DNA of 63,982 nucleotides from Zygnema circumcarinatum SAG 698-1b. Taxonomy: Eukaryota; Plantae; Zygnematophyceae. Shown here piece by piece: positions 1-63,982 of this stretch. Location: contig CM074812.1 in assembly GCA_037447605.1 (NCBI GenBank), forward strand, positions 1,240,001 through 1,303,982. The letters are read 5' to 3'. The notes below the pieces were generated by a model that was given only the letters and a program-made list of their open reading frames with translations, was not told the DNA's origin and did not search any database. The position numbers and the translations under genes are program-made. Each line of letters opens with the position of its first letter. Position 1 is the first letter of the stretch.

Positions 1-263
1 TGCCGCTCTCGCAGGAGTCGCTCTACCCGCGAGGAGGAGAGGGACGCGTTGAGCCGCGCATTGGGCGACTTCACGTCCAAATCGGGGGGGGCGTCGTCGG
101 AGAAGGAGGCGCCGCGGGAGGGAGCGAGAAAGCCCGCCTTGGTCCCGAGCTCGGACGGAGTGGAGAGAGAGAATCTGCGGCGCCGGCCTGAGCCTGCCTC
201 CCCATCGTCCCACTCCCGGTTGCCTCTCTCGGCAGGCGGCTTGATGGTGAGAGGGTACGGCAT
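1..263 (-). CDS. TPS1: 5' part of class I trehalose-6-phosphate synthase (TPS1-like); truncated by the window edge
   Basis: An open frame from ATG at 263 runs to position 1 without a stop: MPYPLTIKPPAERGNREWDDGEAGSGRRRRFSLSTPSELGTKAGFLAPSRGASFSDDAPPDLDVKSPNARLNASLSSSRVERLLRER(Q). The end matches the N-terminal motif of plant class I TPS as I recall it (Selaginella TPS1 SLASSRVERLVRERQ; Arabidopsis TPS1 SRTERLLRDRE). It is missing from the supplied ORF track because it has no stop inside the window. The catalytic domain lies outside the window. Confidence 0.75.
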   Translation of the reverse strand, partial: MPYPLTIKPPAERGNREWDDGEAGSGRRRRFSLSTPSELGTKAGFLAPSRGASFSDDAPPDLDVKSPNARLNASLSSSRVERLLRER

Positions 264-384
264 GCATGCGCTCAGGCAGCCGCAGGGCTGCCCTCCCTCC
301 CTCCCTCCCTCTCCCTCCCTCTCTCTGCTCAAAGCCCCTCTATTTGGACCGCCCTGCCTTCCTGCAACTCTCCCTGCAGGACCC

Positions 385-440
385 TCGCCCTACCCCTACC
401 CCTAACCCTAACCCAATCCTAAGCCCTAGCCCTAGCCTTA
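385..440 (+). repeat. Short degenerate CCCTA(A/G) telomere-like repeats in the TPS1 5' region
   Basis: taccccta-ccccta-accctaacccaatcctaagccctagccctagcc. A similar tagggttagggttaggg run lies at about 2016-2035 in TPP-1 intron 1. Confidence 0.55.
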
Positions 441-778
441 GAGGGAGCTGCAGGCCTCTAGAGCGCCATGCCGAGCTCGCCCCTCCATGGCTGCTTGCAT
501 GCAGAGAGAGAGGGTGAAGCTTGGCAGGGGCGGGCCAAGGAGAGGGGGAAGGCGCCCTGCTCGGTCCACCCCCTTGAGCGATATGGGCACCATCTGGGCG
601 CAACTTACACACCCTATCCAGAGGCGGGCGCAAGCGTGACAGGGATAGGCGCACGCACAAAACGGTACGAGTGAATACGGAAATGTACGAATGAGCTAGG
701 GCCTATGGCAGATCAAAATAGTGATTTGTCGGACCGAATCTTGGATCGGCCAATGGGAAGATAGGCGTCCTCATTGGG

Positions 779-1455
779 CCACGTGGCAGGAAAAAGATTC
801 TGTATACGGCAGAATATCGCGATCCGAGGGAAAATTTCAACGAAGTGAGCGAAGCTAAAAAAAATATCATGTTTGACGAAAATAATAGCTGGAGAGAAAC
901 AAGTTTGAGTTTATCACGGACTGCGATTGGATGAGGGAAGTCGATTTCGCGCCGGTCAGCTCGCTCGCTACTTCAAAAAAATAAACATTTGAACGGAAAA
1001 TAAATCGCTTGTCTTGGGGCAGCTTCCAGGCAAGTGTGGCCGCATCTGGTGACGTCATCCAGGAATATCTGTTCCGTAGACAGGAATGATTGCTTCGTAC
1101 AGAGAGTCTCTTCATGACGACAAATCTGAGATTCAGAAAACTCAGCATAACTTGATGGCGGCCTCTGATTAGTTCATTAAAGATTCGGTCACCAATATTC
1201 AAGATCTAGTCGCTTGCTATGATTAAGGAAGTCCTTAATCCCCTGACCGAATCTAGGAAAGGATCTGCGACCAGGAAAATGGACAGAAGAAAACGAACTT
1301 TTTTCACGTAAAACAATCAAAACGAGTACTCCATCCATAATAGTACTCCTTCTATAATATTACCAGAGTATCTTCCAGTTCGATTTCAGCAAGTCTGACA
1401 GGCCGCTAAGGGCACAAGCACCTCAAAAATGTAACGAATCACGTGTCGCCACGTG
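779..1455. promoter_or_regulatory. G-box/ABRE-like elements in the TPS1-TPP divergent promoter
   Basis: CCACGTGG at 779-786; tandem CACGTG at 1440-1445 and 1450-1455. The motifs are present; function is inferred. Confidence 0.45.
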
Positions 1456-1696
1456 AATTTATCCATGTACAACTGATTTGAACACAATCTACACTGGATT
1501 CTCTTGCAAGTCATCTCGGCCCCTGATTGGTGGATGTTAGATTCACACGTATCTCACTTTTGGTCCGTTCGCCAAGATTCTCCTATAGTCTCCGTACAGT
1601 CCCCCCCCGGCCTCCCTACGGGGGGCCTTCTTCCTGGCCCCGACCTCCGCTCCTCTCCGAGGTCCTCCCTCTCCGCCATGGCTCAGCCTGCCCGCC

Positions 1697-4600
1697 ATGG
1701 CGGCGCCCGCCCGCCGCCTGCGCCACGTGTCTGCCTGTAGAGCCTCCAGCCTGCCGCCTTCCCGCCCGCCCGCCCGTATCCCCGGGCGAAAGGCGGGTCG
1801 AGTGGCGGACGCGGCCATGGCCGGCGAGGCGCGGCTGAACGCGTTCCCGGCAGCCGCCGCCGGCAGCTCCAACTGCTTAGCGGCTATGAGGGCTCTGTCA
1901 CCGCCTAGGGCTGACATGGCAGGTGAGGATGCAGATCTGTACGGAGAGGACGCCGTGGTGGCGCAGTATCGAGCTTGGACGGTGCGCTCCTAGACCTCCC
2001 CGGGTGTGCCGGCAGGGCTAGGGTTAGGGTTAGGGCTTGCAGGGAAGGGATCAGGAGGAGGGGGGGGGATGCAGGATGGAGGGAAGGAATTGCCTATCAA
2101 ATCTGGAACTCCATGGCGAGATTTGCACTGTTTGGACGTGGCAAGCGTCTGAAAGGGAGAGGTTCAGCGGATGATGGCATGGGGGAGGCGTCATTGCTGC
2201 ATGGACAAGTGGATGCATCGCGTCATTTTAGAGAGCCGACTATGCCCTTGGAAAAGCAGATTTGGAGTTGTTAATCCTCCTGCAGCAATGATAAGATATG
2301 CTGCTTCTGAGACTGATTTGAAAAATAAATTCATAGATTCGGTCGGCCTGTTCCTTTCCATTGTCCGAAACCTAAGCCTCAGCAGACTAAGGTGTCAGCC
2401 GATGCGAAGTAGGCGAATTCTGTGACGCCTCGTTCAAAAGCAACTTGAGATCTGCATGGTTTGAAAGGAACTAGAACTGCCGCCTACCTTTGTGGGCATG
2501 AATCCCTCATTGGATAATGAATTAGCGGCCAACTTTCACCTTATAAGGTGGGACTCTTGAAAGAGTCCACCTGATTTAGACTTAGAAATATGCACTGAAT
2601 ACAATCTACCTCTAAAGATTTGCAGCGTGCCTTATTGGCTCAAATGATGTTTCTTTGCCGCTAAGCCTTCTTGTCCGTGAATCCCCCCCTGTACACCTGA
2701 TCCTCCATTTTGTGATTTCATTGGAGGTATCCAAATATATGGATACTTCTGCATGGTTTCGTGCGCTTTGGTGCTCAGGAATGTCTATCCAGTAGTGAGT
2801 TTTTCACTTTTCCATTCGATTTTTGATCGTCGAAGCCAACATTCATTCCGTCGAGATATTTTTTTTAATAGTTTCAGAAATCGGTTTTCGGTTTTCGGCT
2901 TTCAGGCTTCCAAGAATCACCAATCTGTATGAAGCGCCTTCTATTTTTTGATTTCTGACTGCTGGAGTGCCTATGCACTGAATCTTGAATTGAAGCAAAT
3001 TTTTGGTCTGTGAAAAACGCATTCACATGGTGCAGGCGGAGCATCCATCGGCAATTGACAGCTTCGAAAGGTTGATGGAATTGGCGGAGGGGAAAAAAGT
3101 GGCAGTGTTTTTGGACTATGATGGCACGCTTTCGCCCATCGTGGAAGACCCCGACAAAGCATTCATGTCCGAGGCAGTAAGTGCAGGCCTGCTTAGAAGT
3201 TTGTCCTTTTGCTGGACTGGAATACTGTGTTGGAATATGTTCTGATTCCAAGGAATTGCAAAAGTATACAATGTAGGGTGGTAGGGTTGGTTGAATTAGC
3301 GCTCTATGTGGGGGGCGGGGAAGGTTAGGTCTGTTGGACGACTGACTCCTTGACTGTGCTCTTGCAGATGCGAGAGGTTGTGAAGAAAATTGCGCTGCAT
3401 TTTCCAACAGCGATCATCAGTGGGAGAGGGCGGGAGAAGGTTAGTCGTTTTTTGACAGGAGGGAACAATTGAAGGAGAAGTACGAGAAGAAGCTGCTTAC
3501 CGTAAATCTACACTATGCGTACACTTTCAATCGAATTGAACTGTCAAAATAAACTCGATCATTAACTTCAACTTTGCACTCGAAGGGGTGCTATTGCTTT
3601 CAGCTGAAAATTTGAATTTGTTCTTTGATTGATTTAAGTGTTCCTGATGTTCACCCCCACGTTCGGATTCCAGCTAATTGCACCTCAAGATTCAGACAAC
3701 TGACCTATTGTCCAGTTAAACCGGGGACCGTACAACTTTTTCTTTTAAAACTCGTGTCATCTGTGGACCAAGAAAAACGATTTGAACAGAAAAAAAAAAG
3801 AAATTTTCAAATTGAAATTCATTCCGTCTTGTCTCGAATAGTTTCAGAATTGAATGTGATTGAACTTGCAGGTCTACGACTTCGTGCGGCTCTCGGAACT
3901 TTATTATGCTGGCAGTCATGGGATGGATATTAGTGGGCCAGCCACTCGTGCAGGTCTGCATGGAGGGCCGACTCTGAACGGAACAGCTACATGTAGCACA
4001 AATAACGAGGTATTTTCCTTATGGGCTGCCGCAAGCATTGTCCACTAGCTGACCCACTAACTGCTTTTCATGGTATCTGATTCAATTAATTCAATCAATC
4101 AATCAATTCAATATCAATATTCATCAATATTCAGTATCAATTTTCTTTGATCCGAGGATACTGATGCTTGAGATGGCGGCGTGGGGACTGGAGGAGTGTG
4201 CGGTTTGATCTGTGCTTTGGCAGGGAAATGCAATCACCCTTTTCCAGCCTGCTAGCGAGTTCTACCCAGTCATGAATGAGGTAGCTGCCTCTCCCTCACT
4301 GGCATGCAGTCTTTCGCTGCTCTGTGGTTTCTATCTGAATAACAGAAGCCCCTGAGGTGGCAACTGTTTCGTCGTTGAGGTAAGGCCATAAACGTTTCTT
4401 GTTCTTGATACTGAGTGATGTGCAGGTGTATGAGCGACTTAGAGCACAAGCAAAGCATGTGGAAGGAGCCTTGGTGGAGAACAACAAGTTTTGCATTACT
4501 GTGCACTTTCGACGGGTCCGAGAAGAGGTCTGCTGCACTCTCGAATCTGCTTTCCAGATTGACAGCGCTTTCTTTAGTTTGCTTTCAATTCTTTAGGGTA

Positions 4601-6152
4601 CTTCATGGCAATCCCGTCTACCACTTTTTGTCGATGTAAAGCTTAATAATAATGCTTATACATCATACTTGCTCCTTTATACCGTTCACTCCCTTGAACC
4701 TGGCAATCACATTTTTCATATCAGGCTACTATTTTTGCATGTTCTGTTCAGAGGTGGGAGGCCCTGGCGGATATCGTATCGGGAGTGTTGAATGATTATC
4801 CAAAGCTGCGCACAACACATGGGCGGAAGGTGCGTCTTTTGTAGCAATACATTGTCAAAATACTATCCAAACCTAAAGCAGAAACTTTTCGTTTCATAAA
4901 GCCTAGCTGGGAGGGTGTGATTGGTTGGCTTCAAATGGGAAGTTTGAGTCCTACTCTTCACATGCAGGTGTTAGAAGTGCGACCGGCAGTCGATTGGAAC
5001 AAGGGAAAGGCTTTGGCTTATCTTCTTTCTGCTCTTGGTAAGAGCATTTCTGAAGCACAATGTCGTCAGTTGGGGTCTGTTGAACAGCAGTAATCTGCAG
5101 GTTACTCTCAGAGTGCAAGTTTAGGAGTTATGTCTATGGACTCAGTTACGCTACACGACTCGGAAGTTGATGCTAGGGTAAGTGCAAGAGTGATAGGAAG
5201 ATGCAAATAAGGAAGAATGAGTTTAGTCAAACCGATCGTCCCTTCGTTTGTTGTGATTGAGAGGTCTCATTTTGAACCTCGATGGATCGGATGGCCAGGG
5301 CTAGAGAAAGGTGACGAAGTGTTACCTCTCTACATTGGAGATGACCGCACAGATGAGGATGCGTTTTCTGTAAGCCCCCCCACTCATAAAGTCAATAATG
5401 TGTTATGCAACGCTAATGGCAGTACAGCAATTAAGTTAAAAGTTCGCATTCCGTGGAGTCGCTGCTGGAACGAGGCAAGCGCTAATCTCGAAGCATTGAT
5501 ATCGTTTTTGTTGACGAGAAAGTTGAAGCTAAGTGAATGTTAGGACAGGAGGCTTTTTGAAGCAGGCCTAGAAAGCAGTGCGTGGAGCGTAGAGGGCTCC
5601 CTACGGAGCAAGGTCTGAATGGTAGTAAGAAGGAAAACAAGTTCAGGCTTTACTCCAGCAGATCTGAAGGAGCTGTGAGATGAGGAGTGATTGGTGCAGG
5701 TTTTGAAAGACCGTGGCATGGGTTGTGGCATATTAGTTTCCACAACTGTTAAAGTCACACGCGCATCCTATTCACTTCGGGATCCTTCTGAGGTGGGTTA
5801 TGGCACAATCAATCGCCACCTTTACTCTGGTTTGTTCTTCTACTCGTTGCTGTGCAGTCTGCTCAAGTAAGTCAGGAATAATTTGTCTGAGTTCTATGGC
5901 TCCCTATGGCCCTCTCTGTCTCGAGTGTTGAATTCTCCTTGTCTACGCATAGGCTAAATAATTTGGTGAAGACACCGGAAATGGAGTTTCTGAAATTATA
6001 AAACTGGTCTTCAACTGAAGCCCTTTGAGTGGCCTATATTTGCAAAATGTTTCCTAATCAGGCGCACTGACTGTTTATGGCAGGTAATGACCTTTTTGAA
6101 GAAGCTTGTGAATTGGAGAGATGCCCAGCTAAAGCAAAATAGGAGCGATTGA
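1697..6152 (+). CDS. TPP: Trehalose-6-phosphate phosphatase, copy 1 (11 exons; 351 aa from ATG 1817, 391 aa from ATG 1697)
   Basis: GT-AG exons in phase: 1697/1817-1981, 3036-3176, 3368-3439, 3872-4009, 4224-4280, 4426-4527, 4752-4829, 4968-5037, 5299-5369, 5700-5792, 6084-6152. Plant TPP motifs: [13 protein letters not shown] (HAD motif I), [76 protein letters not shown]. Confidence 0.95.
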
Positions 6153-7520
6153 GCCTGGCGGGTTCCGGCGCTGCACTTCCTGTGCAGCTGCGCGATTGGC
6201 CCTCTCTTGCCATAAACACAGAGGAGCACTTCCTCTCCCTCTCCCTCTTCTTCCTGCCTTCCGTCAGGCTGGCGACCCAAGGGCCGTCAAATTGGTTATC
6301 ATATGTTGTTTAACTTAGTTAGACTGGGACGGAGACGTGGCCCAGGCTCCTCCGGGAACACCAAGCAAAGTGTTCCCACGTGGTTATTTGCTCTTGCTAT
6401 TCCGCCTAGCGCCCTGAATACTATCCAGAGTTCTGGAGAAGTTCTTGGCAGACTGATAGAAGCAGCTGACCGGGCAGGACCCTTTAAATTGGTCCTCCTT
6501 TTCTCAAAGCCTTTTGAGCAGGGGTTGAGGGGGGAGTGCGAAAGTGTTGTAGTCGGAATGATCAGGCCATCCGCGGTCCAGGCTGAGGCTCAGCCAGCCC
6601 TGTTGCTGGTGAATGCGAGGAAGTTGAGAGCTCGGGAAGGTCCGGCACCTCCTCGTGGAAAGGACGCCTGCTTCTTGTGTACTCGCGGATTGAGCCGTTT
6701 GATGTGCCACGTTTTACACGCAAAGCGCTACAAAACTCCCGCTACTGAGAACAGATCAAATTGCATATGAAGAGTCAGCCTCGGCAGGATGCTCGTGATG
6801 GCGTGGACGGAGAGCAGCAATTCAAAGCAAAGCAACTGCAACCAGAGGAATTCACGACCCTCGATTTCATTGCAGCCATCAGACTGCCGAATGGACATTC
6901 CAGCAAGAAAGCGTCGAGTACAAAAGCCCAGACGCATCTCTCCCTCTGAAGGAGCCAGGATTGAGAGAGAACCTTGTCCTCGCCCTCACAAGCTATAGTG
7001 AGTGGACGGCTGTTAAGCCCTCCAACCTAAGGAGGGCCATACTTAAGTTCTTGCTTCATTCTACCACGAGGAACACCATAGCTCCCGCTCCACTCCATCC
7101 ATCCCTCCGCTTCCCTCCCCTTCCTCCTCCCCCCTTCCCTCCCTCCCTCCCCCCCATCCCTCTCCTCCATCCGTCCCTCCCACCCGCCCCTTCCCGCCCT
7201 CCCTCCTTCCTCCCTCCCTCCCTCTCTCCCTCTCTCCCGATCTCGAGCCTCAGCCTCAGCTGCTTCCACCTCACAAGGCATGATCGTGCGAACTACAGCA
7301 CAATTCTCCCCAAAACCCGAATACTTTACAGAAAACATTGAGAAACAAGAGGACGAGCAAAAGGGTCCCGCATGGTAAGCTGCTACTGTCATCTTTCCCA
7401 AAGCATTCTTAGGGAAAAGTGACGGAAGGTAGGAAGAAGAGGGAGATACAGCGCTCGTTGTGCAGGGAAAGAGAGGGGCAGTCGTGCAGCTGCACAGATA
7501 GAGCAGACCCCCAGCCAGGC

Positions 7521-10500
7521 TCAACCGCTCTTCTGCTGTGCCACTCTCCAATTCACGAGCTTCTTCAAGAACGTCATTACCTGCCATAAACAATCAGTGC
7601 GCCTGATTAGGAAACATTTTGCAAATATAGGCCACTCAAAGGACTTCAGTTGAAGACCAGTTTTATAATTTCAGACTCCATGTCCGGTTTCTTCACCATA
7701 TCAATTGCCTTATGCGTAGAAAAGGAGCAATCAACACTCGAGACAGAGAGGGCCATAGGGAGCCACAGAACTCAATTATTCCTGACTTACTTGAGCAGAC
7801 TGCACAGCAACGAGTAGACGAACAAACCAGAGTGAAGGTGGCGATTGATTGTGCCATAACCCACCTCAGAAGGATCCCGAAGTGAATAGGATGCGCGTGT
7901 GATTTTAGCAGTTGTGGAAACCAATATGCCACAACCCATGCCGCGCTCTTTCAAAACCTGCACCAAGGATTCCCGCCAATCACTCCTCATCTCATAGCTT
8001 CTTCAGATCTGCTGCAGTAAAGCCTGAACTTGTTTTCCTTCTTACTACCATTCAGACCTTGCTCCGTAGGGAGCCCTCTACGCCCCACGCACTGCTTTCT
8101 AGGGTGTGAATGCTTCTAGATAGCACTTGCCTTACAGAAAACCTCCTTTCCGGCAGCTCCTCCATGGACTGCTAATTTCTTAACTTAATCAATGTACCGC
8201 CATTAGCGTTGCATGACACATTATTGTCTTTATGAGTGGGGGAGCTTACAGAAAACGCATCCTCATCTGTGCGGTCATCTCCAATGTAGAGAGGTAACAC
8301 TTCGTCACCTTTCTCTAGCCCTGGCCATCCGATCCATCGAGGTTCAAAATGAGACCTCTCAATCACAACAAACGAAGGGACGATCGGTTTGACTAAACTC
8401 ATTCTTCCTTATTTGCATCTTCCTATCACTCTTGCACTTACCCTAGCATCAACTTCCGAGTCGTGTAGCGTAACTGAGTCCATAGACATAACTCCTAAAC
8501 CTGCACTCTGAGAGTAACCTGCAGATTACTGCTATTCAACTGACCCCAACTGACGACATTGTGCTTCAGAAATGCTCTTACCAAGAGCAGAAAGAAGATA
8601 AGCCAAAGCCTTTCCCTTGTTCCAATCGACTGCCGGTCGCACTTCTAACACCTGCATGTGAAGAGTAGGACTCAAACTTCCCATTTGAAGCCAACCAATC
8701 ACACCCTCCCAGCTAGGCTTTATGAAACGAAAAGTTTCTGCTTTAGGTTTGGATAGTACTTTGACAATGTATTGCTACAAACGACGCACCTTCCGCCCAT
8801 GTGTTGTGCGCAGCTTTGGATAATCATTCAACACTCCCGATACGATATCCGCCAGGGCCTCCCACCTCTGAACAGAACATGCAAAAAGACTAGCCTGATA
8901 TGAAAAATGTGATTGCCAGGTTCAAGGGAGTGAACGGTATAAAGGAGCAAGTATGATGTATAAGCATTATTATTAAGCTTTACATCGACAAAAAGTGGTA
9001 GACGGGATTGCCATGAAGTACCCTAAAGAATTGAAAGCAAACTAAAGAAAGCGCTGTCAATCTGGAAAGCAGATTCGAGAGTGCAGCAGACCTCTTCTCG
9101 GACCCGTCGAAAGTGCACAGTAATGCAAAACTTGTTGTTCTCCACCAAGGCTCCTTCCACATGCTTTGCTTGTGCTCTAAGTCGCTCATACACCTGCACA
9201 TCACTCAGTATCAAGAACAAGAAACGTTTATGGCCTTACCTCAACGACGAAACAGTTGCCACCTCAGGGGCTTCTGTTATTCAGATAGAAACCACAGAGC
9301 AGCGAAAGACTGCATGCCAGTGAGGGAGAGGCAGCTACCTCATTCATGACTGGGTAGAACTCGCTAGCCGGCTGGAAAAGGGTGATTGCATTTCCCTGCC
9401 AAAGCACAGATCAAACCGCACACTCCTCCAGTCCCCACGCCGCCATCTCAAGCATCAGTATCCTCGGATCAAAGAAAATTTGAACAGCAATCAGATACCA
9501 TGAAAAACAGCTTGTGGGTCAGAGTGGACAATGCTTGCGGCAGCCCATAAGGAAAATACCTCGTTATTGGTGCTACATGAAGCTGTTCCGTTCAGTGTCG
9601 GCCCTCCATGCAGACCTGCACCAGTGGCTGGGCCCATAATATCCATCCCATGACTGCCAGCATAATAAAGTTCCGAGAGCCGCACGAAGTCGTAAACCTG
9701 CAAATTCAATCACATTCAATTCTGAAACTATTCGAGACAAGACTGGAATGAATTTCAATTTGAAAATATCTTGTTTTTTCTGTTCAAATCGTTTTTCTTG
9801 GATGACATGAGTGGTAAAAGAAAAAAGCTGTACGGTCCCCGGTTTAACTGGACAATGGGTCAGTTAAATCCATTGTCTGAACCTTGAGGTGCAATTAGCT
9901 GGGATCCGAACGTGGGGGTGAACATCAGGAACACTTGAAACAATTTTAAGAACAAGTTCAAATGTTCAGCTGAAAACAATAGCACCCCTTCGAGTGCAAA
10001 GTTGAAGTTAATGATCGAGTTTATTTTGACAGTTCAATTCGATTGAAAGTGTACGCATAGTGTAGATTTACGGTAAGCAGCTTCTTCTCGTACTTCTCCT
10101 TCAATTGTTCCCTCCTGTCAAAAAACGACTAACCTTCTCCCGCCCTCTCCCACTGATGATCGCTGTTGGAAAATGCAGCGCAATTTTCTTCACAACCTCT
10201 CGCATCTGCAAGAGCACAGTCAAGGAGTCAGTCGTCCAACAGACCTAACCTTCCCCGCCCCCCACATAGAGCGCTAATTCAACCAACCCTACCACCCTAC
10301 ATTGTATACTTTTGCAATTCCTTGGAATCAGAACATATTCCAACACAGTATTCCAGTCCAGCAAAAGGACAAACTTCTAAGCAGGCCTGCACTTACTGCC
10401 TCGGACATGAATGCTTTGTCGGGGTCTTCCACGATGGGCGAAAGCGTGCCATCATAGTCCAAAAACACTGCCACTTTTTTCCCATCCGCCAATTCCATCA

Positions 10501-11720
10501 ACCTTTCGAAGCTGTCAATTGCCGATGGATGCTCCGCCTGCACCATGTGAATGCATTTTTCACAGACCAAAAACTTGCTTCAATTCAAGATTCAGTGCAT
10601 AGGCACTCCAGCAGTCAAAAATCAAAAAACAGAAGGCGCTTCATTCAGATTGGGGATTCTTGGAAGCCTGAAAGCCGAAAACCGACTTCTGAAACTATTA
10701 AAAAAAATCTCCCGACAGAATGAATGTTGCTTCAATGATCAAAAATCGAATGGAAAAGTGAAAAACTCCACTACTGGATAGGCATTTCTGAGCTCCCGAG
10801 AACACTTAATAGCATGGTTAAGAGTCCATGTATTTCTGATTTACAGGAATGCATGGATACTTCCAGTGAAATCAGCATGAGCATTTCCTTCAAGAAAATA
10901 TGACAACGGAGTCACGGACACCAAGGCTCCGTGGCAAGAAACATCACTTGAAGCCATTGAGGACGCTGCAAATCCTTTTAGCTGAATAGTATTTGGTGCA
11001 CATTTCTAAGTTTGAGTTAGGCGAACTCTTCCAAGTGAAAGAGGACCTCCTAATACTGTGAATGCTGGTCGCTGAGTCACTATTCAATGGGTGAACACTG
11101 CCCACAGAGGAAAGCAGCAGTTCTTGCTCCTTCCAAACCATCTCGAATCTCGAATGTTGCTTCAACGCGGCGTTGAAGAAAACCCCTAGCTTATTGCGGC
11201 TCCTTGGTCTGCTGAAGCTCAGGAAGCAGATAATTGAAATCGAATAGACTGACTGAAACGGTGAAAGTCCTTTCAAATCAGTCCCAGAAACAGCATATCG
11301 TGTCAATGCTGCTGGTGGATTAACAACTGCAGCACAGCAAGCGCATAATCGACTTCCAAACTTGATGCGCGTATCCGCTGCTTAGCCCCTTCCCACTGGT
11401 CATCCACCGTAACTCTCCCTTTCAGACGCTCCCAGCGTCCACATATTGCAGAATGTTTTGGATAGGTTCCAAATTGAACCAAACAGCACATCAACTTCTC
11501 CCAACCCTAACTCTTCCGCCACACACTCCCCCCTTGGGAGGTTCAGGATCCCGACCTTCCAAGTTCGGTACTGTGCCTCCATGGCTTCCTCCCCGTACAG
11601 ATCCACGTCCTCATCTGCCACGTCCGCCCTAGGCGGCGACTGCGCCCTCATCGCTTCCAAGCAATTGAGGCTGTCGTTGTGCGCCAGCGGGAAGGCGTTT
11701 AGCCGCGCCTCCCCGGCCAT
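7521..11720 (-). CDS. TPP: Trehalose-6-phosphate phosphatase, copy 2 (11 exons, 348 aa); inverted duplicate of copy 1
   Basis: Exons (minus): 11720-11556, 10537-10397, 10205-10134, 9697-9560, 9395-9339, 9193-9092, 8867-8790, 8651-8582, 8320-8250, 7957-7865, 7580-7521. Exon lengths equal those of copy 1 except the last, and the same catalytic motifs are present. Confidence 0.95.
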
Positions 11721-12119
11721 GCCCGTCCCCGCCCGCGCTGCTCCACCTGCCTGTTGCCGGGAGGGCGGCCGGGCGGGTCGCAGGTTCTAGAGGCCGCCAC
11801 GTGGCGGGCGGAGGCAGCCATTTCGCACGTGCGCAGCCATGGCCGAGCCTCCGCGAGCAACAGCGGGCGGCAGCGCCTTGGCTGGGGGGGGGAGGGAGGA
11901 CCGGAGGAGGAGGTGTACGGAGACCGTATCGAATGCCGTACAATTTGGACATAGCGGCCGTACAGAGTGAATGGGACACCGTACACACATTTTCTGGTTC
12001 ATTTTTTTTTTTTTTTTTTTTTTTTTTGTGGATGATGACGCTCCAAAGTTGCAAACCGGAGACGGAAAGTAGACTTCGAAACGAAGTTTTCCGACTGGTT
12101 TTTGTTTGTTTCCACCGAG

Positions 12120-12360
12120 AAACCCTGCGGTGATCGCTGAACCCGAAACTTTAAACCCGAAACCCACGAGAAACCCTAGCCTCTAAACCCAACCCCTCAG
12201 TCCTAAACCTTAAACCCACCGAGAAACTCTAACCTCCAAACCCTAACCCTAAGCCCTAAACCCTCGAGAAACCCTAAACTCTAAACCCTTAACCCTAAGC
12301 CCTAAACGCACCGAGAAGCCCTACCCCCTACCCCAAACCCTGCACTCTAAACCCGAAACT
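12120..12360 (+). repeat. Degenerate interstitial telomeric (CCCTAAA)-like / telo-box array
   Basis: About 25-30 variants of AAACCCT/AACCCTA/AAGCCCT over 240 bp upstream of TPP-2. A site II-like TGGGCCCA follows at about 12410. Confidence 0.8.
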
Positions 12361-14477
12361 GTTGAACTCCCTCCGCACGTGCGAATCGGTTTGTAATGCG
12401 GATGAAAGCTGGGCCCATTTCCCGTTCATGAAGGACGAGCTTCCTCCCCTTTCCCAACTGCTCTGAAAGTGGCCTCAAACCATCCAGCGGACACTCAAAT
12501 GAACATGGATAAAGACAAAATGCAGAAGCAGTTCGAGCAGATAAGTGTGGCATGGATGGAGGCACGACATTTGAGCATGTCACGAAAGATGAGAGCTTGG
12601 TTTGGGTTGGTTTCATTCAGTTTCGTTAGGTTTAGAATGATTTGGTTCGTGCTGTTGCATTCTTATATGATTTGTTTCTCTATCTACAACGTTCGGTCGC
12701 TATACTCGTTCCATATGGTTTGGTTAGGTTTGCTTCCTTGTGGACATTGGCGGCTGGGGGCTATCAGGAGTAGGACGGTAAGGGGGGTACTGTCTCAGAC
12801 TTGATAGAAACTAACCCTAATTGGAACTGTGCTCCGGTAATGGCTCGATAAGGCCTTTGAGATGGAGTCGACACTACTCTCTATTGAATTTCAATATGTA
12901 CATGATTCGCGAGAAATCGAACCTCCTGTCATGCTGGTCGGTAGAAAGTTAAAGTAGTGGTAGCCCCTGCTTAAATTAAGCCGTTGAAATTTCTGAATAA
13001 TGCAAATTGAATTGACGAGCTGCGGTTGCCCTTACGTGACAGCCAAGGGATGCCGACTACTTACTAAACCATTACCGCCGCCAGTCTTCAGTAGTTTGCT
13101 AGCAGCTAATAACTTCCGAAGTGTGGGTCAGTTAGTAACCATAGTTGCTACCTAAGTGCTTCCGAACCAGGGTTAAATACTAAGTAAGAAATCCCAACAC
13201 GCGTTATTACTAGTAGCGACCAGCAGACGCAGAACTACATGCAAGTGCGAAGGCGTTTGGAGACAGCAGCCATCGCCGCTCAGCTTGGTCTGCCCTCTCA
13301 CTGACTGCCGAAACATCTCAACCACCCGCTCTCCCGGCAAACGCCCTAATGTGGAACATAGGTCTGAAAAAGCAGGTCGAAAGCCCTAAGTGAATCTCAC
13401 AAAGGGTGAGCATTCAATACCACAGGAGTTGGCTGCAAGAACGAGCGCAAGCCCAAAATGATTACGAGCACCTACTTGTTGCTCCCAAGGATAAATGCAG
13501 AGCTTTAAAAAAGGGCCCACTTTACAGGCGCTTAGGCACAGAGTAACACTGCAGACGAGACAAGAACTTCCATTGGCCGAACTGGAGGTGCTCATAATAT
13601 GCGGCAATTCATGAACTGATAGGAAATGGCATTCCACGCCTCTGGCTCTTGAGCAAGATTGGAGGAGGAATTCTGCAAAGATATGACGAAGTTTAGGGTT
13701 CAAGGTTTCTTCTTTGAAGACAGATTTTGACCACAGCCGGCGTTTCTTGGCCACAAATCGACTGGTCAAACTCAGTTTGACAGGCATTGCAGGCCACACT
13801 AACATCCAGAAACATCCACGATTGTACCACTCGCGCAGAAGTGTTACCTCCGTTAGCACATAGTTGCAGAAGATAGATGGACGAATCATATATTAAATTA
13901 ATCGACAAATTGAATCAGTAAAGTACAACTTGAAAGAAAGAAAAAAGAACTTTTACTATACATGTTCGTTAGCCAGTGCTGTGTTATAAGAAAACAGCTT
14001 GGCGTCATCTGCTCTTTACAGTGAGTAGCCAAAGGAAACAAGCTGGAGAAGGGGCAAGCCTGCAACCAAGACGGATCTCATAACCGAAAGCTTGCTTCCA
14101 ACATGTTCTCCTGCCACCAATAACAATAAGGATGATGCCTTTTTCCAGCCGACCAAGGCCGACAAGAGCAAAAAGCAACAAAATTTGTATCCAATGAGAG
14201 GAGCGCCTTGCAAAAAAGTGACCAACCTTCATTTCAGAGAAGCGATGGCATCTCTCCGCAGCGCCTCGCTCCTACCCTGCCATGAAGCCCGGCACACTGG
14301 ATATCCCTACAGAACTCGGACTCCTCAGAGTGGAAATCGTTCATCCTCAGACTGGGGGGTCTTCAATAAATGATGCTTGGTGCAGGAAATCCATCTACCT
14401 GGAAGTTGCTTCTGACGATGTTGCGAGCGAACTGCTCATGCACAGCATGCCGGGTTGAGGAAAAGGAGTTCTGCTGC

Positions 14478-14960: not shown

Positions 14961-16287
14961 TGCCCCAGTCGCCTGCACTCCTCCTCTGATGCTATATCTT
15001 GCAGGGACGATTGCAGCACGTTCAGGAGCACGGGAAGCAGCCGTCCTTCACTACTGCAGCAAGCAGTGCAAGAAGCCTTCAGACCATTTCCAAATTCTCC
15101 AGAATACAGTTCCCTCTCCGCCTCCCGCTCTCTCACTCTCCCACTCCCCTCCCCCTTTCTCTCTTCCACTCACCTCCCTCAGTCTCTCCCACTCCCCGGC
15201 CTCTCTCTCTCTCTCTCTCCCTCTCCCTCCCTCTCGAACTGTATTACCTTCCGATACCCTCCCTACTACGAATTAGTTGAACACACAAGAAATTATATAA
15301 TTTTTTGAGCACGTGGCGCCTCGCCATTGGACGATGTCCACATAGTTCGATGGAGCCGCGTCGACTCCGGGTCAGCGGCGCGCCGACGACCGAACGACAG
15401 AGGCGGGCAGCTGCCCGGAAACAAAAACGTTTGAATTCAGCCAATGGTGACGCTTCATGACACGTGTAAAGTGAAAGACGTTCACTTTGTTTCCGACGGG
15501 CAGGTCGTTGCGCGCAGCTGTTTGGACGCGGAAAAAGTCGGAAAAAAAACCGCCACTGTTTGTCCGCGGATGGTCAAATTCCGGTCCGCCGGGTGGGAGA
15601 TTCGGGGGCATGTCCGTACTGTACAATGTCGTATCTGGTCAGAATAAAACAAAAGAATCTTTCGAAAGATCCGGCATATCCGATCCGTCCCGAAACAAGG
15701 ACTGGTAAAGATCGATTACCGTACGGAAAATATTTGTCGTCTTCAAATCGACAAAGGTAAACATTTGATTTAGATCCTCTCCCAAAAATCTCGGCGTATC
15801 TGGCTCTTTGCCGTATCTCCGCAGCAAGGTCAAATGAAGTAGAAAGCGACACGTGTCGACTTGGAAATCGGCAGCCCACATGCCTACGCTCTTTCTAAAC
15901 TGTATCTTGACGGGAAACCGCTACAAAGGTCAGACTATAATTTGTTGTTCATCACATACATGGACATAAATTTCTCGATTTGCTTGGAAAACAGAAACTG
16001 GAACAGACTGTAGTTCTCCGATGGAAATACCATGAAGCGTTCCTTTGACGACGACCATTTTCCATGCGTGGCTCGCTGTTCGCCGTTGCAAATGCCCGTT
16101 TGCGATCGTTTTACGGAACTGTATTTGTGACGCTGCCACCATAGAACGCAGACGACCCTGCAGCGACGTCAGCATTCGACTCGCAGTGTGAGAGAGAGTG
16201 TGAGAGTGAGCGAGCGAGAGAGAGTGCGAGAGAGAGCGAGAGAGAGGACGGAGAAGAGGGAGAGGCGGAGAGAGGGCGCAGGACGCC

Positions 16288-20542
<4,255 letters not shown>

Positions 20543-30000: not shown

Positions 30001-30399
30001 TCTATCTTCACATAACAGGTACACCTTTGGGATGAAACATCGACCATCTCTTCACTCGTCCCAAATCATGTCGCTGAGCAAATGTTCGCGGGAATCGAAG
30101 CGGGCAACTTGAAAAGGAGTTTCAAGTCGACGAAAACTACTTATCACGGCGGTGGTTCTCAGAAAAGGTCAGATCAGTATGAGGGATGTGCGGAAACGTG
30201 TGAAGAAGCAGATGCTGTGGACAGGGAGGCAATTGTCCTCCTCCTCGTTTATGCCCTTCTGGGCAAGAACAGCAAGTTCCGCTTCAGCATCTTGTACGAC
30301 GCGGATAGAGAATGCAGCCCACAGTCGCCGTATAGACTATGTTTGCAGGCATTCTCTGCGCCTCCTGTAAGGGAGGGAATCCTTGGGCCCTTGCGCTAA
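27081..30399 (+). CDS. OB-fold + Zn-ribbon (CxxC) nucleic-acid-binding protein; At3g17030-like / SHLD2-type OB fold (7 exons)
   Basis: In-phase exons 27081-27281, 27501-27642, 27941-28042, 28251-28661, 29306-29510, 29744-29882, 30019-30399. OB-fold pattern VKLGDESRSYFQVALW..GDVLFLRNIKI; LSAVLEW; GCLSCG; VIYRPFSVHLWDE..MFAGIEA; LLGKNSKFRF. All resemble the recalled plant family. Continuity requires the U12 intron 27643-27940. Confidence 0.75.
27643..27940 (+). other. U12-type (minor spliceosome) intron with GC-AG termini
   Basis: 5' end GCATCCTTC vs U12 consensus RTATCCTT; branch site TCCTTGAC at 27921-27928; AG at 27939-27940, 13 nt after the branch A. Removing it restores the frame (..FLR-N-IKI..) and skips an in-frame TAG. 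Confidence 0.75.
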
Positions 30400-31094
30400 C
30401 CCGTTGGCCTCTTTCCTCTGCCAATGGTTGGAGGGATTGCCTCCCCATGACATGGTTGGTCCCTACCTCACAACGTGTAGGATCCTACGAATGCGGGGCC
30501 TCGCTCGAAGAGAAGAATGAACTAGTATTTATCACGAGATGGTGACGGAGGAAATGAATATGTAGTGGCCGGGGTGTATCAGGAAGGCGAGGCACTATGT
30601 ACAGCATGAGTGAAGTTTCTTCCAAAAACAGCATTCTCGATGTGATGATTCTGAAAAAATTCACTGTCTGGTTCAGTAATGAAACACGTAAATTCGTCGA
30701 TCTTGACACAACTTTCAGAGCTGTTCTCCATTGCGGATACAGATTAGTTTAGCATCGTAAACCTGTCAATGGCTGCTCGCTAGGCCGACCTATGTTACGG
30801 TCGTTGCGACCGGAATTTGGCAATAACTGGAACTGAACTACATGTGTAACTGAACCGCAGCGAGACCACCATGGAACTGGCCCTCGGCCGCGCGCAGCAT
30901 CGGAAGTCGCAGTCAAGGGCGCCTTTCATTGTGTCAACCAATCAGAGCGTGCCACGTAATCTTTGATTTTTAGTATTGTCGGACGTGGAGATCTCCCATT
31001 GATCAGTTTATGATGACGTGTCACGAGTTACGGATCCATCCCGTTCTGTGGATCTCGCGCTCACACGTGGCAGCCCCTCCGTGTAGCACGCCCC

Positions 31095-31190
31095 GTTCGT
31101 ACGATTAGACGGCTCCACAATGCAAAGTACGGTTATGTCCGTACAGTGGTATGTCCGGTAGTGGCCGTACATGTTTCGTACGGTACGGCA
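31095..31190. promoter_or_regulatory. Dense GTAC cluster (SBP-box/CuRE-type core) upstream of the coiled-coil gene
   Basis: GTAC at 31099, 31127, 31141, 31167, 31178 and 31183, mostly as CGTAC/GTACG. Similar clusters occur upstream of other genes in the window. Confidence 0.5.
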
Positions 31191-32355
31191 GCATAAAGCA
31201 TCCGCAGAGTTCGGGCTGAGGGAGGGCCGCAAGCCGCCGCTGGAGGGGAGGGTGGAAGAGGGCCAGAGTGGGCGAGGGAGAGGGAGTGGGAGAGGGAGAG
31301 AGCGGGAGGGAGGGGGAGAGAGAACGGTAGAGGGCGGAGGAAAGGGAGAGGAAGCAGGTGAAGAACAAGGCGGGTAAGGAACATCTGCTAAAGTGTTTCT
31401 TGCCTTATGCTTGTATTGGAAATGGCTGACTGGATACAGGAGGGTGAGTGGAAGGGGATGACGGGAGAGGTGGGAAGGGGTAGGATGTGCGCAAAGATGG
31501 AGCCAGCTGTGGGAGGGGAGAGAGTGAGGTGGCGGTGATGAGGGGGTGAGGGAGGGACTGTAGGAAGAGGAAAGAATGGAGAGGGATAGGAGGGGGGGGA
31601 GAGGGGGCAGTGTGTAGAGAGGGAGATAAGCGAGCTGTGGAGATGTGGAGATGAAGGAGGAGAGAGGAGTGGGTGCGACATAAGAGTGGCTACACTTCGA
31701 GTGCTTGGCATTATCTCAGAGGCTGCATATTTTAGTTTTTGTTGTTCCGTTTTCGCGGTTGCTGCTTGGATCATGTTATCTTTATGTAGGAGGCAGGCTG
31801 CTGTCTATCATGCGGGGAGCCTCTCTGTCTGCCATTCCTCTTTTAGTGTGTGCTTCTCTTGTTTGACAGAACGTGTTGTGCTCGTCCTTGGCTGCTTCTG
31901 TCCATGTTGCCTTCCGCTTATGTGAGATATCAGACGCCATTTCTCGGATTGAAGGTCGTTTTTGTTTCCTTTTGAGAAAGCTGACTGAAGTCTTGCTGTA
32001 CGTGCTGTTGACTCTCCAATTTCTCTTGCAGTTTCATTACAGTTTCAATCCGGTGTGATCATTTGCGATCACTATCATCATTTGATCGTACCATATTTAG
32101 TCGCCTTGTCATTTACTTTCTCTTGGCTTCAGTTAACTCGTTTCTCCCTTGTGAATGATTTGAAGTGATTGGTGTATCACAGCATACTTGATTATGGATG
32201 GTGGTTTGAAGTATCTAGCTGTATGCATCTTCCTAACAAAAAGGACGAAGGGGAGTGATGCACTTTAGTTTTGATGACTCAAAACGCACCAAAATTATGG
32301 CCTTCGTTTGATGTTTTTGGTTTTCGTCGTCTTAGTTTATTGCGCAGGTATATCA

Positions 32356-34644
32356 ATGGCTGGAGGTCAGAAGAAAAAGGGGAAGAAGCCGGGCGGACAG
32401 CCTGCAAAAGGCGGAGAGAACACAGCAGCGTCATCTCTTCCTACTGATGCTATCGCTGGAGACGGCAGCACCGTTCCAACTAGAGCTGAAGGAACTTCAG
32501 TTTCTGATGCTTTCAGTGATGCCAGCAGTGTGGGACATGCTAGTGATGTGGCCACGAGTGATGTTACAAATGGCTCGGATTCCGTGAGTGCTGCAAGCAT
32601 CACGGCGACGGATGGAGGCTCGACAACTTGGTCGAGAGATACTGAAGTGGGGAATGACGATCTTGGTGGGGTTGGGAAGAGCGTTAAGAATTCTTTGGAG
32701 GAAAAATATGGAAAGTATGGGTTGATTGAAGGAAATGGCAATGAAGCGTATTTGGAAAATGGGGAAGGCGTTGTCACTCCGGAACTTGTAGAGTTAAGGG
32801 CTGAACTTTCAGCTCAGAAAGTGAGGTGTTCAGAGCTTGCAGCTCGGTGTGAGGAATTGACAAGTGTGAATCGCAAACTGGAGGAGGAAAAGGTGAGTAT
32901 GAAGGATGAGGCAGATAAGAGGTCTAAGGAGGTTCAGGACCTGCTTCATGAGAAGGAAATTATTAAAACAGATGCAGAAACTTTTTCAAATGACTTGACA
33001 AGCATGAAGACTCTGATTTTGGAGTTTAGCAGTACAACTGAATCACAATTGAAGGAAATTCAGAATTGGAAGGAAAAGACATCTATTGCAGAATCAAGAG
33101 CGGAGGATGCAGAAAAAAGGCTGCAAAGTGCGGAGGAAAAGGAGAAAGAAGTCCGAGAGCGATTCGAAACTTTGGCCGAGGAGAAGGAGGAAGAGGTCAA
33201 GTGCAGAAAAGATGCAGAGAAACTTGCTATGGAAGCACAGGAGAAGCTGGCTGGCAAGGTAGCCGAGTTGACGCAATTGGAGAACCATCTTGGAGAGCTC
33301 AGAGTTGAGCAAGAAAGCTGGATGGATGAGAAGAAGTATTTGCAAGAATCGTCCTGGCAGGCGGTTGCAAGAGCAAATGCTGCGGAGGAAAGAATGAGAA
33401 TCGCTGGGGATAGGTCTCAAGCCGATGAAGAAGCGGGTGCGAAGGTGAGAGAATTGGAGAGCGAAAACGAGAAGGTAAAGAAAGAGAACGAAGAGCTGCG
33501 CGTATGGAAGAGGAGTGCTGAAAAGAAGGCAACAGATGAATTCGAGGCAAAAATGGCTTTAGAGAGGATGAAGGTCGCTGCAGAGCGGGAAGCTGCGGCA
33601 GCAATAGAAAAGGAGAAGAGTTTAGAGAAGGAGCTGGACAGGATGAAGAGTAAGATCCAGGAGCTGGAAACTGAAGTACAGAAATTGGGAGATGTCGGAA
33701 ATTCTTCCGAGGGAGCAAGTCAAAGGACAGGAGATTTGGAGACACAGACGAGAGAATTGGAATCTACTGCAGAGAATTCAAAGAGGCTATATGAGGATAT
33801 GCGGAGGGAGAAGGCGACAGTTGATCAGGAGCTAAGGAGGGCGATAGAGAAGTATGAACAAGTAGAAGCTGACGCAGAGCAGCAGACTAAGGGGCTGAAG
33901 GCGAAAGTGAGCTCGATGGAAAAAGAAAACTCCAATTTAACCAGGTACATTTTGAGAAGCAATAGTTTGGATCCATCAGGTGTTGAGTTTGGAGTACCAT
34001 GTGATGCCTAACTCTTTCATCCTTTCATATTCCGTTGCTCGTGCCACGGCCCTTCTATACTCCTGTCGTCATAGGTAGATGTCTGATGTCAGCCCGTCTT
34101 GTCGAAGTTTTTTTTTCTGGTTTTCGTATTTGTTCCCATAGCATTTAGATGAGCATTGTGAGAGTTTTCCTAAACCCACAAAGCTTTAATTCGTATGAAG
34201 CCCAGAGGTCCCACTCCGCTGTTTCCTTTCAGTTTGCTTCTGATCTTGAGAGTAATCCAATCCATCATTTCCCGCCTTCACAGTAATGGGGTTTAAGGTG
34301 TTGGTGGCTCGTTGTGCAGCCAAGTGCAAAAGCAGGAGGCGGACATGGCCAGGCTTCTTCACCAGCTTGGTGCCATCTCGCAGGAGCTGAAAGCCGTCGA
34401 CGAGGAAAGGGTGAAATTCCGGGAATTGAACGACCAACTGAAAGCACGCCATCGTGGCATGGACTCCTCCTTGATGAGTGCTACGGCAGATGCAGAACTT
34501 CTGAGGATGGAACATCAGGCCCTGAAGCAGCAGTTCCATGCGAACTGGAGCCGTTGGACGGCTGCAGCGGCGGTGGCTACGGGAGCCATTGCAGTGGTGG
34601 GACTTGTGGGAAGGATGCAGGCGAGGAGGCTGGGAGGGAGCTGA
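32356..34644 (+). CDS. Tail-anchored long coiled-coil protein (PMD1/PMD2-like architecture), 637 aa
   Basis: Exons 32356-33944 and 34320-34644 (phase-2 GT-AG intron); probable 5' UTR exon ending near 31374. Heptad-rich E/K region and C-terminal hydrophobic WTAAAAVATGAIAVVGLVG followed by RMQARR. The family call is from architecture only. Confidence 0.7.
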
Positions 34645-50902: not shown

Positions 50903-51005
50903 CTAAACCCTAAACTTCAAAACCTGAGTCTTAAACCCTAAACGCTAAACCTTAAACCCTAACACTAAATTTTGAACCCTAACTTTTAACCCTGAAGCTT
51001 AAATC
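50903..51005 (+). repeat. Second degenerate (CCCTAAA)-like telomeric/telo-box array
   Basis: aactaaaccctaaacttcaaaacctgagtcttaaaccctaaacgctaaaccttaaaccctaacactaaattttgaaccctaac... Confidence 0.75.
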
Positions 51006-62110: not shown

Positions 62111-63982
62111 GGCTGCCCGCCGCGTCCTCGTATCGTCCTCACTGTCAGTACATCAATTGTACGAACAATCCGTTTGTACGGAGGGCGCATGTGCGACAAT
62201 AACGGATGTGCTGCCGCGTGGCACGTAGACAATGGCAGACCAGATCCGGGCAGGACTCACAGGAATAGAAACCTGCCCGGGGACGATTCAAGCAACAAGA
62301 TTGGCTGAAAAAAGGTCACGCTGACGCCGACACTCGTTCCGGGCAGACCGAAATTGATTCGAGGACGAAACTTCGACGAAGCCCACCTTGAGGGGACGTG
62401 CGTTTTCCTCTGATTTGCGACATTTGGATGACGTCGTATGATGTCCTATGCCGTCATATGTACGGAACTTGAGTGGACCAGAGGTTCTCAGCATTAAGGT
62501 GAAATCGGCCAGCAACCAATGGAGACTCGCCACGTGGGCAGTTGTGTACACGTAGGACAAGTACGGTTCTAGAAGGGAGTTGGGGACCATGGAATTCATG
62601 CCTAAAGACAACCAAAAGGAAATGAGGAGAACTTGGAAATTGACATTGGAAAGGGACCCAAAAGGGAAGTGGCTTGATTTAGGAATATGGAAGTGATCAT
62701 GTGTATCAACCGTTGGAATGGTTGCCAACTATTGATTCGTGACCCAGCCAACCATTGCCCATGGTTGCCAACCATTGGACGACCAACCATTGCCATCCAA
62801 TGGCTGTCCAATGGTTGGCGACTCCAGTGGTCCGACCACTGTTACTTTTTACAGATTGGTAAATTTAATTAAAGCCATTAGGGGGAGTCAGACCTTGACC
62901 ATCGCCAAATCAATTTCGTAAGCCTGTCGGGCGAATTAAGCATTGGCTAGGTACGCATTTCTGTACGGCTGTGTACGGCGGAGCCGCGGATCCCGACCCG
63001 GAATTCGTACACGAAAGAAGGGGCGTTATTCTTCATTTCGCAGACGTTTGGCCGAAATTTTTGGCCCGGCGCAGACTATTATAGCTGTACGGAAAGCGTT
63101 AAGGAACTGCCTGGTTGCGATAACCATAGTTATGCTTGATTTCGCAGCTCGCGAAGAACCGTCGATGAAATGGGCGGACACGATGCCGCCAGGAAGGTAT
63201 TCGCATGGAGTGAATTCGCCGTTGCGTGACAAGCAACGCAACGGCTAAGTCGCCGCTTGGAGAGGGAGTGGTCCTGGTGGTTTCGAAGGCAGCTTAGCCG
63301 CCGCGTTCGCGTAGTACGCAATCCCTTGCGCGTTCAGTTCGCGCATGTGAAGGCGCGGCCCGACCCTTGGGCAAAAAAAGGAACTCACAGTATCACACAA
63401 GACACAAGCCACAATTTGAAACCAAGAGACAATTGTAAACTTGTACGAAATTGTAAAATGTGTAGAGACCAGTACATCGAGAGAACCGGACACACAACAA
63501 CTCGATGGTATGCGTTTACAAAATTCGAAACCTTGTATATATGAAATGGCTTTGTGTACAAATTTGATTGTTAAAAGTGTGAGTAGTTGCTAGTGGCTGG
63601 TATGAATGAAACCGGCGTTGTTTCCCTTGTTTGGTAGATCCTTCTGTCCAGTTTACAAACTTGTGTGCCTATAAAGGTTTGTAGGATTAGAGCCCGCCGA
63701 ATGGCATTGGTACGTTTACACAGCATTGCCTTTGTGCGCGTGGGAATGAGGGAGGGATGGAGGGAGTGTGCGATTGAGTTGAGTTGCGCGTTTTGTGTTT
63801 GTAAGTGTTTTCGAGTTTTTTTCTGTGTGGTTATAGTGCTGTTCCCAATGGAACTCGCACTCCAAAAGCCTAGCAAGATTATCTTATCGACAAATGTTTT
63901 GGCCTAGTTTATAAATTATCGGTCAAAAAGCTCTCAATGTTGAAAGTGTTGCAGGCTGGTGGCGCCTTCACGGTCTCTTGGT

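Follow-up and report, generated by a model that had tools for sequence, protein, structure and literature searches.

The first exon of a predicted trehalose-6-phosphate synthase gene head-to-head with an inverted pair of trehalose-6-phosphate phosphatase genes in the alga Zygnema circumcarinatum

Genes at the locus

We report that the left end of a 63,982-nucleotide stretch of Zygnema circumcarinatum SAG 698-1b DNA (contig CM074812.1, positions 1,240,001 to 1,303,982 of the forward strand; hereafter the window) carries two complete genes for trehalose-6-phosphate phosphatase (TPP), TPP-A and TPP-B, and beside them an open frame that, judged by its alignment, is the start of a trehalose-6-phosphate synthase (TPS) gene of class I, known from its first exon alone. 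The DNA of the window is nuclear, rich in introns and from an alga of the green lineage. In land plants the central signal of sucrose status is trehalose-6-phosphate (T6P), the level of which varies with the balance of TPS1 and TPP. A first-pass annotation of the same DNA had proposed that this lineage assembled an operon-like TPS-TPP-TPP cluster, in which T6P synthesis and removal are co-regulated from one divergent promoter; taken as a whole, this interpretation is only partly supported by the data given below. The features of the locus are as follows.

1..263, minus strand: first exon of the TPS gene, predicted from its open frame, homology and RNA contigs; the gene extends past the left window edge
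264..450, minus strand: probable TPS 5' untranslated region and transcription start zone (RNA contigs to 281; CT-rich tract)
382-441: degenerate telomere-like CCCTAG/CCCTAA array, a tandem repeat within the TPS start zone
564..1629, no strand: untranscribed TPS/TPP-A spacer, defined by RNA depth, carrying CCGTAC (1592) as well as G-box/abscisic acid-responsive element (ABRE)-type sites (780, 1440, 1450)
1630..6152, plus strand: TPP-A, from the splice model, RNA joints and Pfam PF02358; 11 coding exons
TPP-A exons, plus strand, with GT..AG borders: 1817-1981, 3036-3176, 3368-3439, 3872-4009, 4224-4280, 4426-4527
TPP-A exons, continued, plus strand, with GT..AG borders: 4752-4829, 4968-5037, 5299-5369, 5700-5792, 6084-6152
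6153..7520, no strand: spacer of the convergent TPP 3' ends, its outer parts still belonging to the inverted repeat (5989-6134 / 7530-7675)
7088-7238: CT-rich low-complexity tract in the TPP-A/TPP-B spacer
7521..11720, minus strand: TPP-B, the mirror of TPP-A (11720-11556 ... 7580-7521); 11 exons, 348 amino acids, intact

The first exon of the TPS gene

The minus-strand frame from 263 to 1 comprises 87 codons, starts with an ATG, reads MPYPLTIKPP...SLSSSRVERLLRER and is stop-free to the window edge; one of the remaining minus-strand frames over this exon has stops, and the second is also open. Relatives of the exon were sought with the stop-free 129 codons of positions 1-389 (minus strand) and scored on residues 43-129 only, and four exon-1 open reading frames (ORFs) were found to match with 48-58% identity. 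Exon 1 of these relatives reads on as ...SRVERLLRERQLRRSGSCFQFG... and then as QRLLVVANRLPVSA...SAGGLVSALLG, which is the start of the GT20 domain; the same exon runs via QRLLVVANRLPVS to ...SAGGLVSALLG/GGLVSALLG, where that domain begins. A full-library search from the exon-1 ORF of one relative led to Selaginella lepidophylla TPS1 (P0020, 994 amino acids), and P0020 as query returned class I TPS, of which the best 120 were listed; the protein of the window's own TPS gene was not found among these 120.

The best match to the 87 residues among the fetched proteins is P0168 (73% identity over residues 1-85), a protein of 992 amino acids assembled from the RNA runs SRR8128902-8, with GT20 (PF00982) at 134-600 and a TPP-like domain (PF02358) at 659-855. 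When 25 class I TPS were placed in a maximum-likelihood tree, P0168 came out as sister to the TPS1 of Mesotaenium endlicherianum (support 100/100), a position from which a streptophyte alga of zygnematophyte type is the most likely source of the window. The exon was aligned as a set of eight sequences, i.e. the window frame, P0001-P0005, P0168 and the Mesotaenium TPS1 (P0227); it is colinear with class I TPS from Met1, and all 27 columns that are invariant over the eight sequences are kept in the window. Moreover, the S-R-V/T-E-R-L-L/V-R-E/D-R motif of the N-terminal extension is present. Judged by the colinear alignment and the 27 invariant columns, the left-hand frame is where a class I TPS begins, and the motif that the first-pass annotation had recognised in it is borne out. 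The same annotation had the gene crossing the window edge: RNA contigs (depth 12-67) cover positions 1-281 and overrun the edge by approximately 390 nt, and one DNA contig does so by 795 nt. Since both kinds of contig continue past the edge, a bare remnant of a TPS is unlikely, and we infer that the gene is complete beyond it.

Positions 261-267 (minus strand), at the TPS start, read ATGCATGCC and include an extra, out-of-frame ATG 4 nt 5' of the conserved MPY start; the frame of this ATG is likewise open to the window edge, and the context is weak at both ATGs. Across the algal and bryophyte-type sequences the N-terminal extension also has, without variation, the basic-x-x-Ser blocks RRRFSLSTP and RGASFS-D, which resemble basophilic kinase sites and which the N-terminus of Arabidopsis TPS1 presumably lacks.

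Two TPP genes and their inverted duplication

TPP-A and TPP-B are complete trehalose-6-phosphate phosphatase genes, intact and spliced. The TPP-A product has 351 amino acids from the ATG at 1817, or 391 from the in-frame ATG at 1697, and ends with the stop at 6152. Nine of the ten TPP-A introns are visible as joints in RNA contigs from three RNA-type runs, and for the tenth (the last) the support is a loose RNA end at 5794 continuing with the sequence of the terminal exon. A joint called as AG..TC (3442 to 3875) is in our reading an alignment slip near the true 3439/3872 border. The exons match the Trehalose_PPase family (PF02358) colinearly, with profile positions 1-22, 24-49, 51-73 and 95-125 in four separate exons; each match is singly below the 27-bit cut-off, and their simple sum is approximately 77 bits. 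The HAD (haloacid dehalogenase) motifs DYDGTL and GDDRTDED, i.e. the DxDxT nucleophile and the acidic GDDxxD, are found in both TPP products, which are stop-free and have GT..AG at all exon borders.

In the assembly TPS and TPP-A are divergent, head-to-head, with an ATG-to-ATG distance of 1554 nt (ATG 1817) or 1434 nt (ATG 1697), which agrees with the earlier claim of a complete TPP gene about 1.4 kb away on the opposite strand. The claim that a second complete, inverted TPP follows directly also holds: TPP-B is intact, TPP-A and TPP-B are convergent, tail-to-tail, and 1368 nt separate their stop codons.

RNA contigs of TPP-A begin at 1630 and 1681, and the ATGs at 1678 and 1697 both lie inside the transcript. 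The leader has an upstream ORF of 20 codons from ATG 1678, and translation from ATG 1697 would add 40 Arg/Ala/Pro-rich residues of transit-peptide-like character.

The arms of the inverted repeat are 99% complementary over 4139-5439 / 8180-9480 and 2888-3625 / 9948-10685, whereas the 5' ends of the two genes are 79% (exon 1) and 73% (intron 1) identical. The duplication includes the gene body only (1807-6134 for TPP-A, 11728-7530 for TPP-B), with no homology upstream of the ATGs. Judged by these comparisons TPP-B is an old inverted duplicate of the TPP-A gene body: the 99% core against the 73-79% of the 5' ends, together with homology that ends at the start codons, argues for an old duplication of the gene body with a homogenised core, the identity of which is presumably kept by gene conversion. 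Since no homology is found upstream of the ATGs, TPP-B does not share the region on the TPS side of TPP-A.

Transcription and the TPS/TPP-A spacer

All three genes are transcribed, and in the same RNA runs. The expression data are the assembler word depths of three RNA runs and give no precise expression ranking: RNA contigs of the TPP-B type have depths of 305-1224, TPP-A exon 1 of 20-103 and the TPS exon of 12-67. Across the three RNA-like runs the contig depths are 12, 67 and 28 for the TPS exon and 20, 101 and 103 for TPP-A exon 1, with both lowest in run X7.

The TPS RNA contigs stop at 281, where they are broken by the repeat at 282-448, and only weak depth (5.4) is seen over 449-563; over 601-1600 the RNA depth is zero in the two clearly RNA-derived runs (X8 and X18). 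With the transcribed end of TPS at about 281-450 (weak to 563) and that of TPP-A at 1630, the gap between the two is approximately 1.2-1.35 kb, the starts being mapped approximately. By the usual definition the transcription starts of a bidirectional gene pair are no more than 1000 bp apart (PMC2648788); the TPS and TPP-A ends, at about 1.2-1.35 kb, lie beyond this distance. The words 'operon-like' and 'one divergent promoter' in the first-pass annotation find no support in this region, given the length of the gap, the absence of RNA depth in mid-spacer and a G-box of its own for each gene, and the promoters of TPS and TPP-A appear to be separate.

The repeat at 282-448 is bridged by no short-read contig in four runs, and the join at this place rests on the assembly itself. 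DNA contigs from both sides end inside this same repeat, as expected of low-complexity tracts.

Sequence motifs and repeats near the gene starts

The G-box hexamer CACGTG occurs between TPS and TPP-A at 780, 1440, 1450 and 1724 (the spacer and the TPP-A leader) and upstream of TPP-B at 11798 and 11826; each gene has its own proximal G-box. Over the whole window CACGTG is 3-fold enriched (22 sites against 7.4 expected), and the ABRE-type pattern ACGTGKC is enriched window-wide in the same way. CCGTAC is 5-fold enriched in the window (36 against 7.4); one copy (1592) closely precedes the start of TPP-A, and four lie upstream of TPP-B at 11915-11984. Telomere-like repeats form six clusters:

332-475, 1951-2099, 12180-12368, 50903-50983, 55969-56120 and 56365-56493: degenerate TTAGGG / TTTAGGG clusters

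Three of these are at the 5' ends of the trehalose genes, where the G-rich strand is the sense strand, and (TTAGGG)2 with at most one mismatch is found seven times in the window, with 0.15 expected. These motifs are enriched window-wide and are also present at other places, and for this reason the G-box, CCGTAC and the telomere-like tracts look like general promoter features here and not like a trehalose-specific code.

The telomere-like repeats were considered as a shared element specific to the trehalose genes and rejected, as the other three clusters are elsewhere (one at 50.9 kb, two near 56 kb). CCGTAC occurs in tight groups, e.g. at 11915-11984, 31127-31188 and 62460-63092, apparently at gene starts. 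Upstream of TPP-B a telomere-like array occupies 12152-12317, and an uninterrupted stretch of 26 T at 12002-12027, which reads as A along the sense strand of TPP-B, lies between this array and the four CCGTAC sites. A scan of the whole window against Rfam gave no match.

Gene order in relatives

Linkage was tested from the TPS1 side: flanks of 10 kb were examined through the Pfam listing of their called genes and by tblastn searches (E≤1) with TPP-A as the query. No TPP was detected within 10 kb of the TPS1 loci of Calypogeia fissa (L007), Riccia fluitans (L008) and Selaginella moellendorffii (L010), or of the two TPS1 loci of Sphagnum magellanicum (L009 and L015), and we take Arabidopsis TPS1 (At1g78580) likewise to be without a TPP neighbour. 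From an algal relative, an 8.4-kb Logan contig (L001, SRR9302961) carries a complete TPS1 gene that is closest to P0168. This gene, at 2120-6364, is compact (approximately 4.2 kb) with short introns, and is followed by a C-terminal transketolase exon on the other strand; its head-to-head neighbour is a Cpn10 exon (483-662), 1.5 kb upstream on the opposite strand. No TPP lies beside TPS1 in this contig, within only 2.1 kb of upstream sequence. Cpn10 was sought in the window, asking whether the TPP pair had been inserted between Cpn10 and TPS1, and none was found. Other contigs are too short to inform on linkage, namely two metagenome contigs from the exon-1 alignment scan (L011 and L012, less than 1 kb upstream) and the European Nucleotide Archive contigs of P0001 and P0003 (412 and 205 nt upstream).

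The TPS-TPP linkage to which the first-pass annotation drew attention is real as a gene order in this assembly. Among the relatives sampled it was not found: TPS1 has no TPP neighbour at the five loci from land plants, nor in the one contig of an algal relative. That annotation had also named a species-specific linkage with uncorrelated expression as the sign of chance adjacency, and the relatives sampled agree with one half of this, a linkage specific to the lineage. In the literature searched, with most subscription journals outside it, we came across no description of linked TPS and TPP genes for any plant or alga. The TPS1-TPP adjacency probably arose in this lineage rather than being ancestral to streptophytes.

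The TPS1 genes of these land plants differ in structure. The annotated gene of C. fissa is intronless (L007 10001-12916; 2916 nt for 971 amino acids) and that of R. fluitans nearly so (L008 10001-13408; 3408 nt for 1078 amino acids); the Sphagnum genes span 7.8-9.4 kb (L009 10001-17836; L015 10001-19414). The liverwort TPS1 may have been replaced by a retrocopy.

Interpretation of the adjacency

We favour, with a probability of roughly 0.6, the explanation that the locus is a real, lineage-specific neighbourhood of three ordinary, expressed trehalose-pathway genes that are adjacent by happenstance. A class I TPS, which would make T6P from UDP-glucose together with glucose-6-phosphate, is transcribed leftwards, and TPP-A is transcribed rightwards from a start some 1.2-1.35 kb from that of TPS; TPP-B is an old inverted copy of TPP-A, the core of which was presumably homogenised by gene conversion. 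Each gene apparently has promoter-proximal elements of its own (G-box, CCGTAC, telomere-like tract), of a kind that would be general to gene starts in a compact genome. The adjacency may lend a shared chromatin or enhancer context, and co-regulation is required by nothing shown; the proximity of the genes would have arisen without selection, and a functional coupling of TPS and TPP is possible.

Several points weigh against happenstance. Under a random gene order a TPS would have a TPP as its immediate neighbour at a rate of about 1 in 500 to 1 in 2500 per genome, a rough estimate from assumed rather than measured figures (approximately 17,000 genes, a few members per family). TPS and TPP catalyse successive steps, a coupling of which is known to be useful, as in bacterial otsBA and fused TPS-TPP enzymes. 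Four CACGTG lie in the approximately 1.5 kb of the TPS/TPP-A spacer, where the window average would predict about 0.5; such an excess is compatible with a shared bZIP or bHLH input. Finally, the sole close algal comparison (L001) offers just 2.1 kb upstream of TPS1. Because chance adjacency is rare and coupling is physiologically sensible, a functional pair stays a live minority reading, which we regard as tentative and clearly less probable than happenstance. According to it TPS1 and TPP-A would be co-regulated via shared G-box/ABRE-type elements of the spacer, so that T6P is made and removed together and flux is directed to trehalose (e.g. under desiccation or osmotic stress) with the T6P signal undisturbed, the TPP duplication adding phosphatase capacity. 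The head-to-head position of consecutive pathway steps speaks for this, as do the four CACGTG in the spacer and TPP-A leader with two more upstream of TPP-B, the finding that the same RNA runs hold transcripts of all three genes and, very weakly, the depths of the TPS exon and TPP-A exon 1 that are both lowest in X7. However, the spacing exceeds 1 kb and its middle is silent, none of the sampled relatives has the linkage, motifs of these kinds are widespread in this genome, TPP-B with its deeper RNA contigs is outside the shared region, and word depths from three runs cannot show co-expression. On the tests made here an operon-like, co-regulated cluster is not supported: the spacer is both long and silent, its motifs are of general occurrence, the TPP copy with the stronger representation is outside and the order is found in no sampled relative. 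The boldest form of the idea, that a zygnematophyte-type alga near land-plant ancestry built a TPS1-TPP-TPP cluster in which a divergent G-box spacer co-induces T6P synthesis and removal, giving bulk trehalose under stress with T6P signalling unperturbed as a eukaryotic counterpart of otsBA, is doubtful and, in our judgement, unlikely.

It is also conceivable that the left-hand frame is not part of a working TPS gene beside TPP-A: either it is a truncated first-exon remnant, or it was joined to the TPP side by a misassembly within the 282-448 repeat. That only 87 codons are visible, and that contigs break at 282-448 with no short-read contig spanning it in four runs, would fit such a reading; however, no stop interrupts the frame, which keeps each of the 27 positions that are invariant in the family, RNA contigs of depth 12-67 run approximately 390 nt and a DNA contig 795 nt past the edge, and DNA contigs of both sides ending in the same repeat is typical of a low-complexity tract in short-read assemblies. 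We consider this reading very improbable.

If an alga from near the base of the land-plant lineage had tied the two genes both physically and in regulation, the locus would be a natural model in which to separate the production of trehalose from signalling by T6P, and a rare gene cluster of primary metabolism would be added in the green lineage. As it stands, with ordinary orthologues in a lineage-specific neighbourhood, its value is in a clean annotation of three genes and a cheap hypothesis for expression data of this alga.

Other features of the window

Strand skew is strong at two places: 16-18 kb has a GC skew of -0.25 and an AT skew of -0.29, and 32-34 kb has a GC skew of +0.34 (regions 16001-20000 and 30001-34000). 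Long stop-free frames are present in these regions, one at 17445-18878 (477 amino acids) with no Pfam match and one at 32308-34011 (567 amino acids) with only a sub-threshold match to Shugoshin_N (21.5 bits against a cut-off of 30 bits).

Comparison with known systems

Like the plant class I TPS (AtTPS1, S. lepidophylla TPS1 and Physcomitrella PpTPS1/2), the predicted protein has the SRVERL(L/V)RER extension, which would precede a GT20 domain; P0020 carries ...SLASSRVERLVRERQLR.... Only the first 87 residues lie in the window. The MPY-L-I-P, RRRFSLSTP and RGASFS-D blocks are common to algal and bryophyte-type sequences and are lacking in P0020. AtTPS1 is, we assume, also without the MPY-L-I-P block, as it is without the other two. 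The extension is inhibitory in the moss, Arabidopsis and Selaginella enzymes (PMC6984353), and its removal raises activity in yeast assays (PMC6984353, citing Van Dijck 2002).

Both phosphatases resemble the plant TPP family (AtTPPA-J type, PF02358, HAD) in being single-domain proteins of approximately 350 amino acids with DYDGTL and GDDRTDED. Plant TPPs are intron-rich genes, with 11 exons here, and growth of the family by duplication is common in plants. Unlike in that family, the copies are arranged tail-to-tail as an inverted duplicate, the core of which is homogenised, and one copy has TPS1 as its neighbour.

As in bacterial otsBA and the fused TPS-TPP of Thermoproteus tenax (TPSP, PMC3634074), both steps of trehalose synthesis are physically coupled. 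However, otsBA is one polycistronic transcript from one strand and TPSP is one polypeptide (PMC3634074), whereas the genes reported here are separate, monocistronic and spliced, on opposite strands and with a silent spacer; the single strand and single transcript of an otsBA-type operon are thus replaced by opposite strands and separate spliced transcripts. Eukaryotic head-to-head pairs tend to be co-expressed and related in function (PMC1487180, PMC2648788), and TPS and TPP-A share their divergent orientation, but with ends approximately 1.2-1.35 kb apart instead of at most 1000 bp (PMC2648788). With respect to metabolic gene clusters, two enzyme types of one pathway are adjacent, and the expression data consist of three runs of word depths; an arrangement maintained among relatives is not seen, there being no TPP by TPS1 in L001, L007, L008, L009, L010 and L015.

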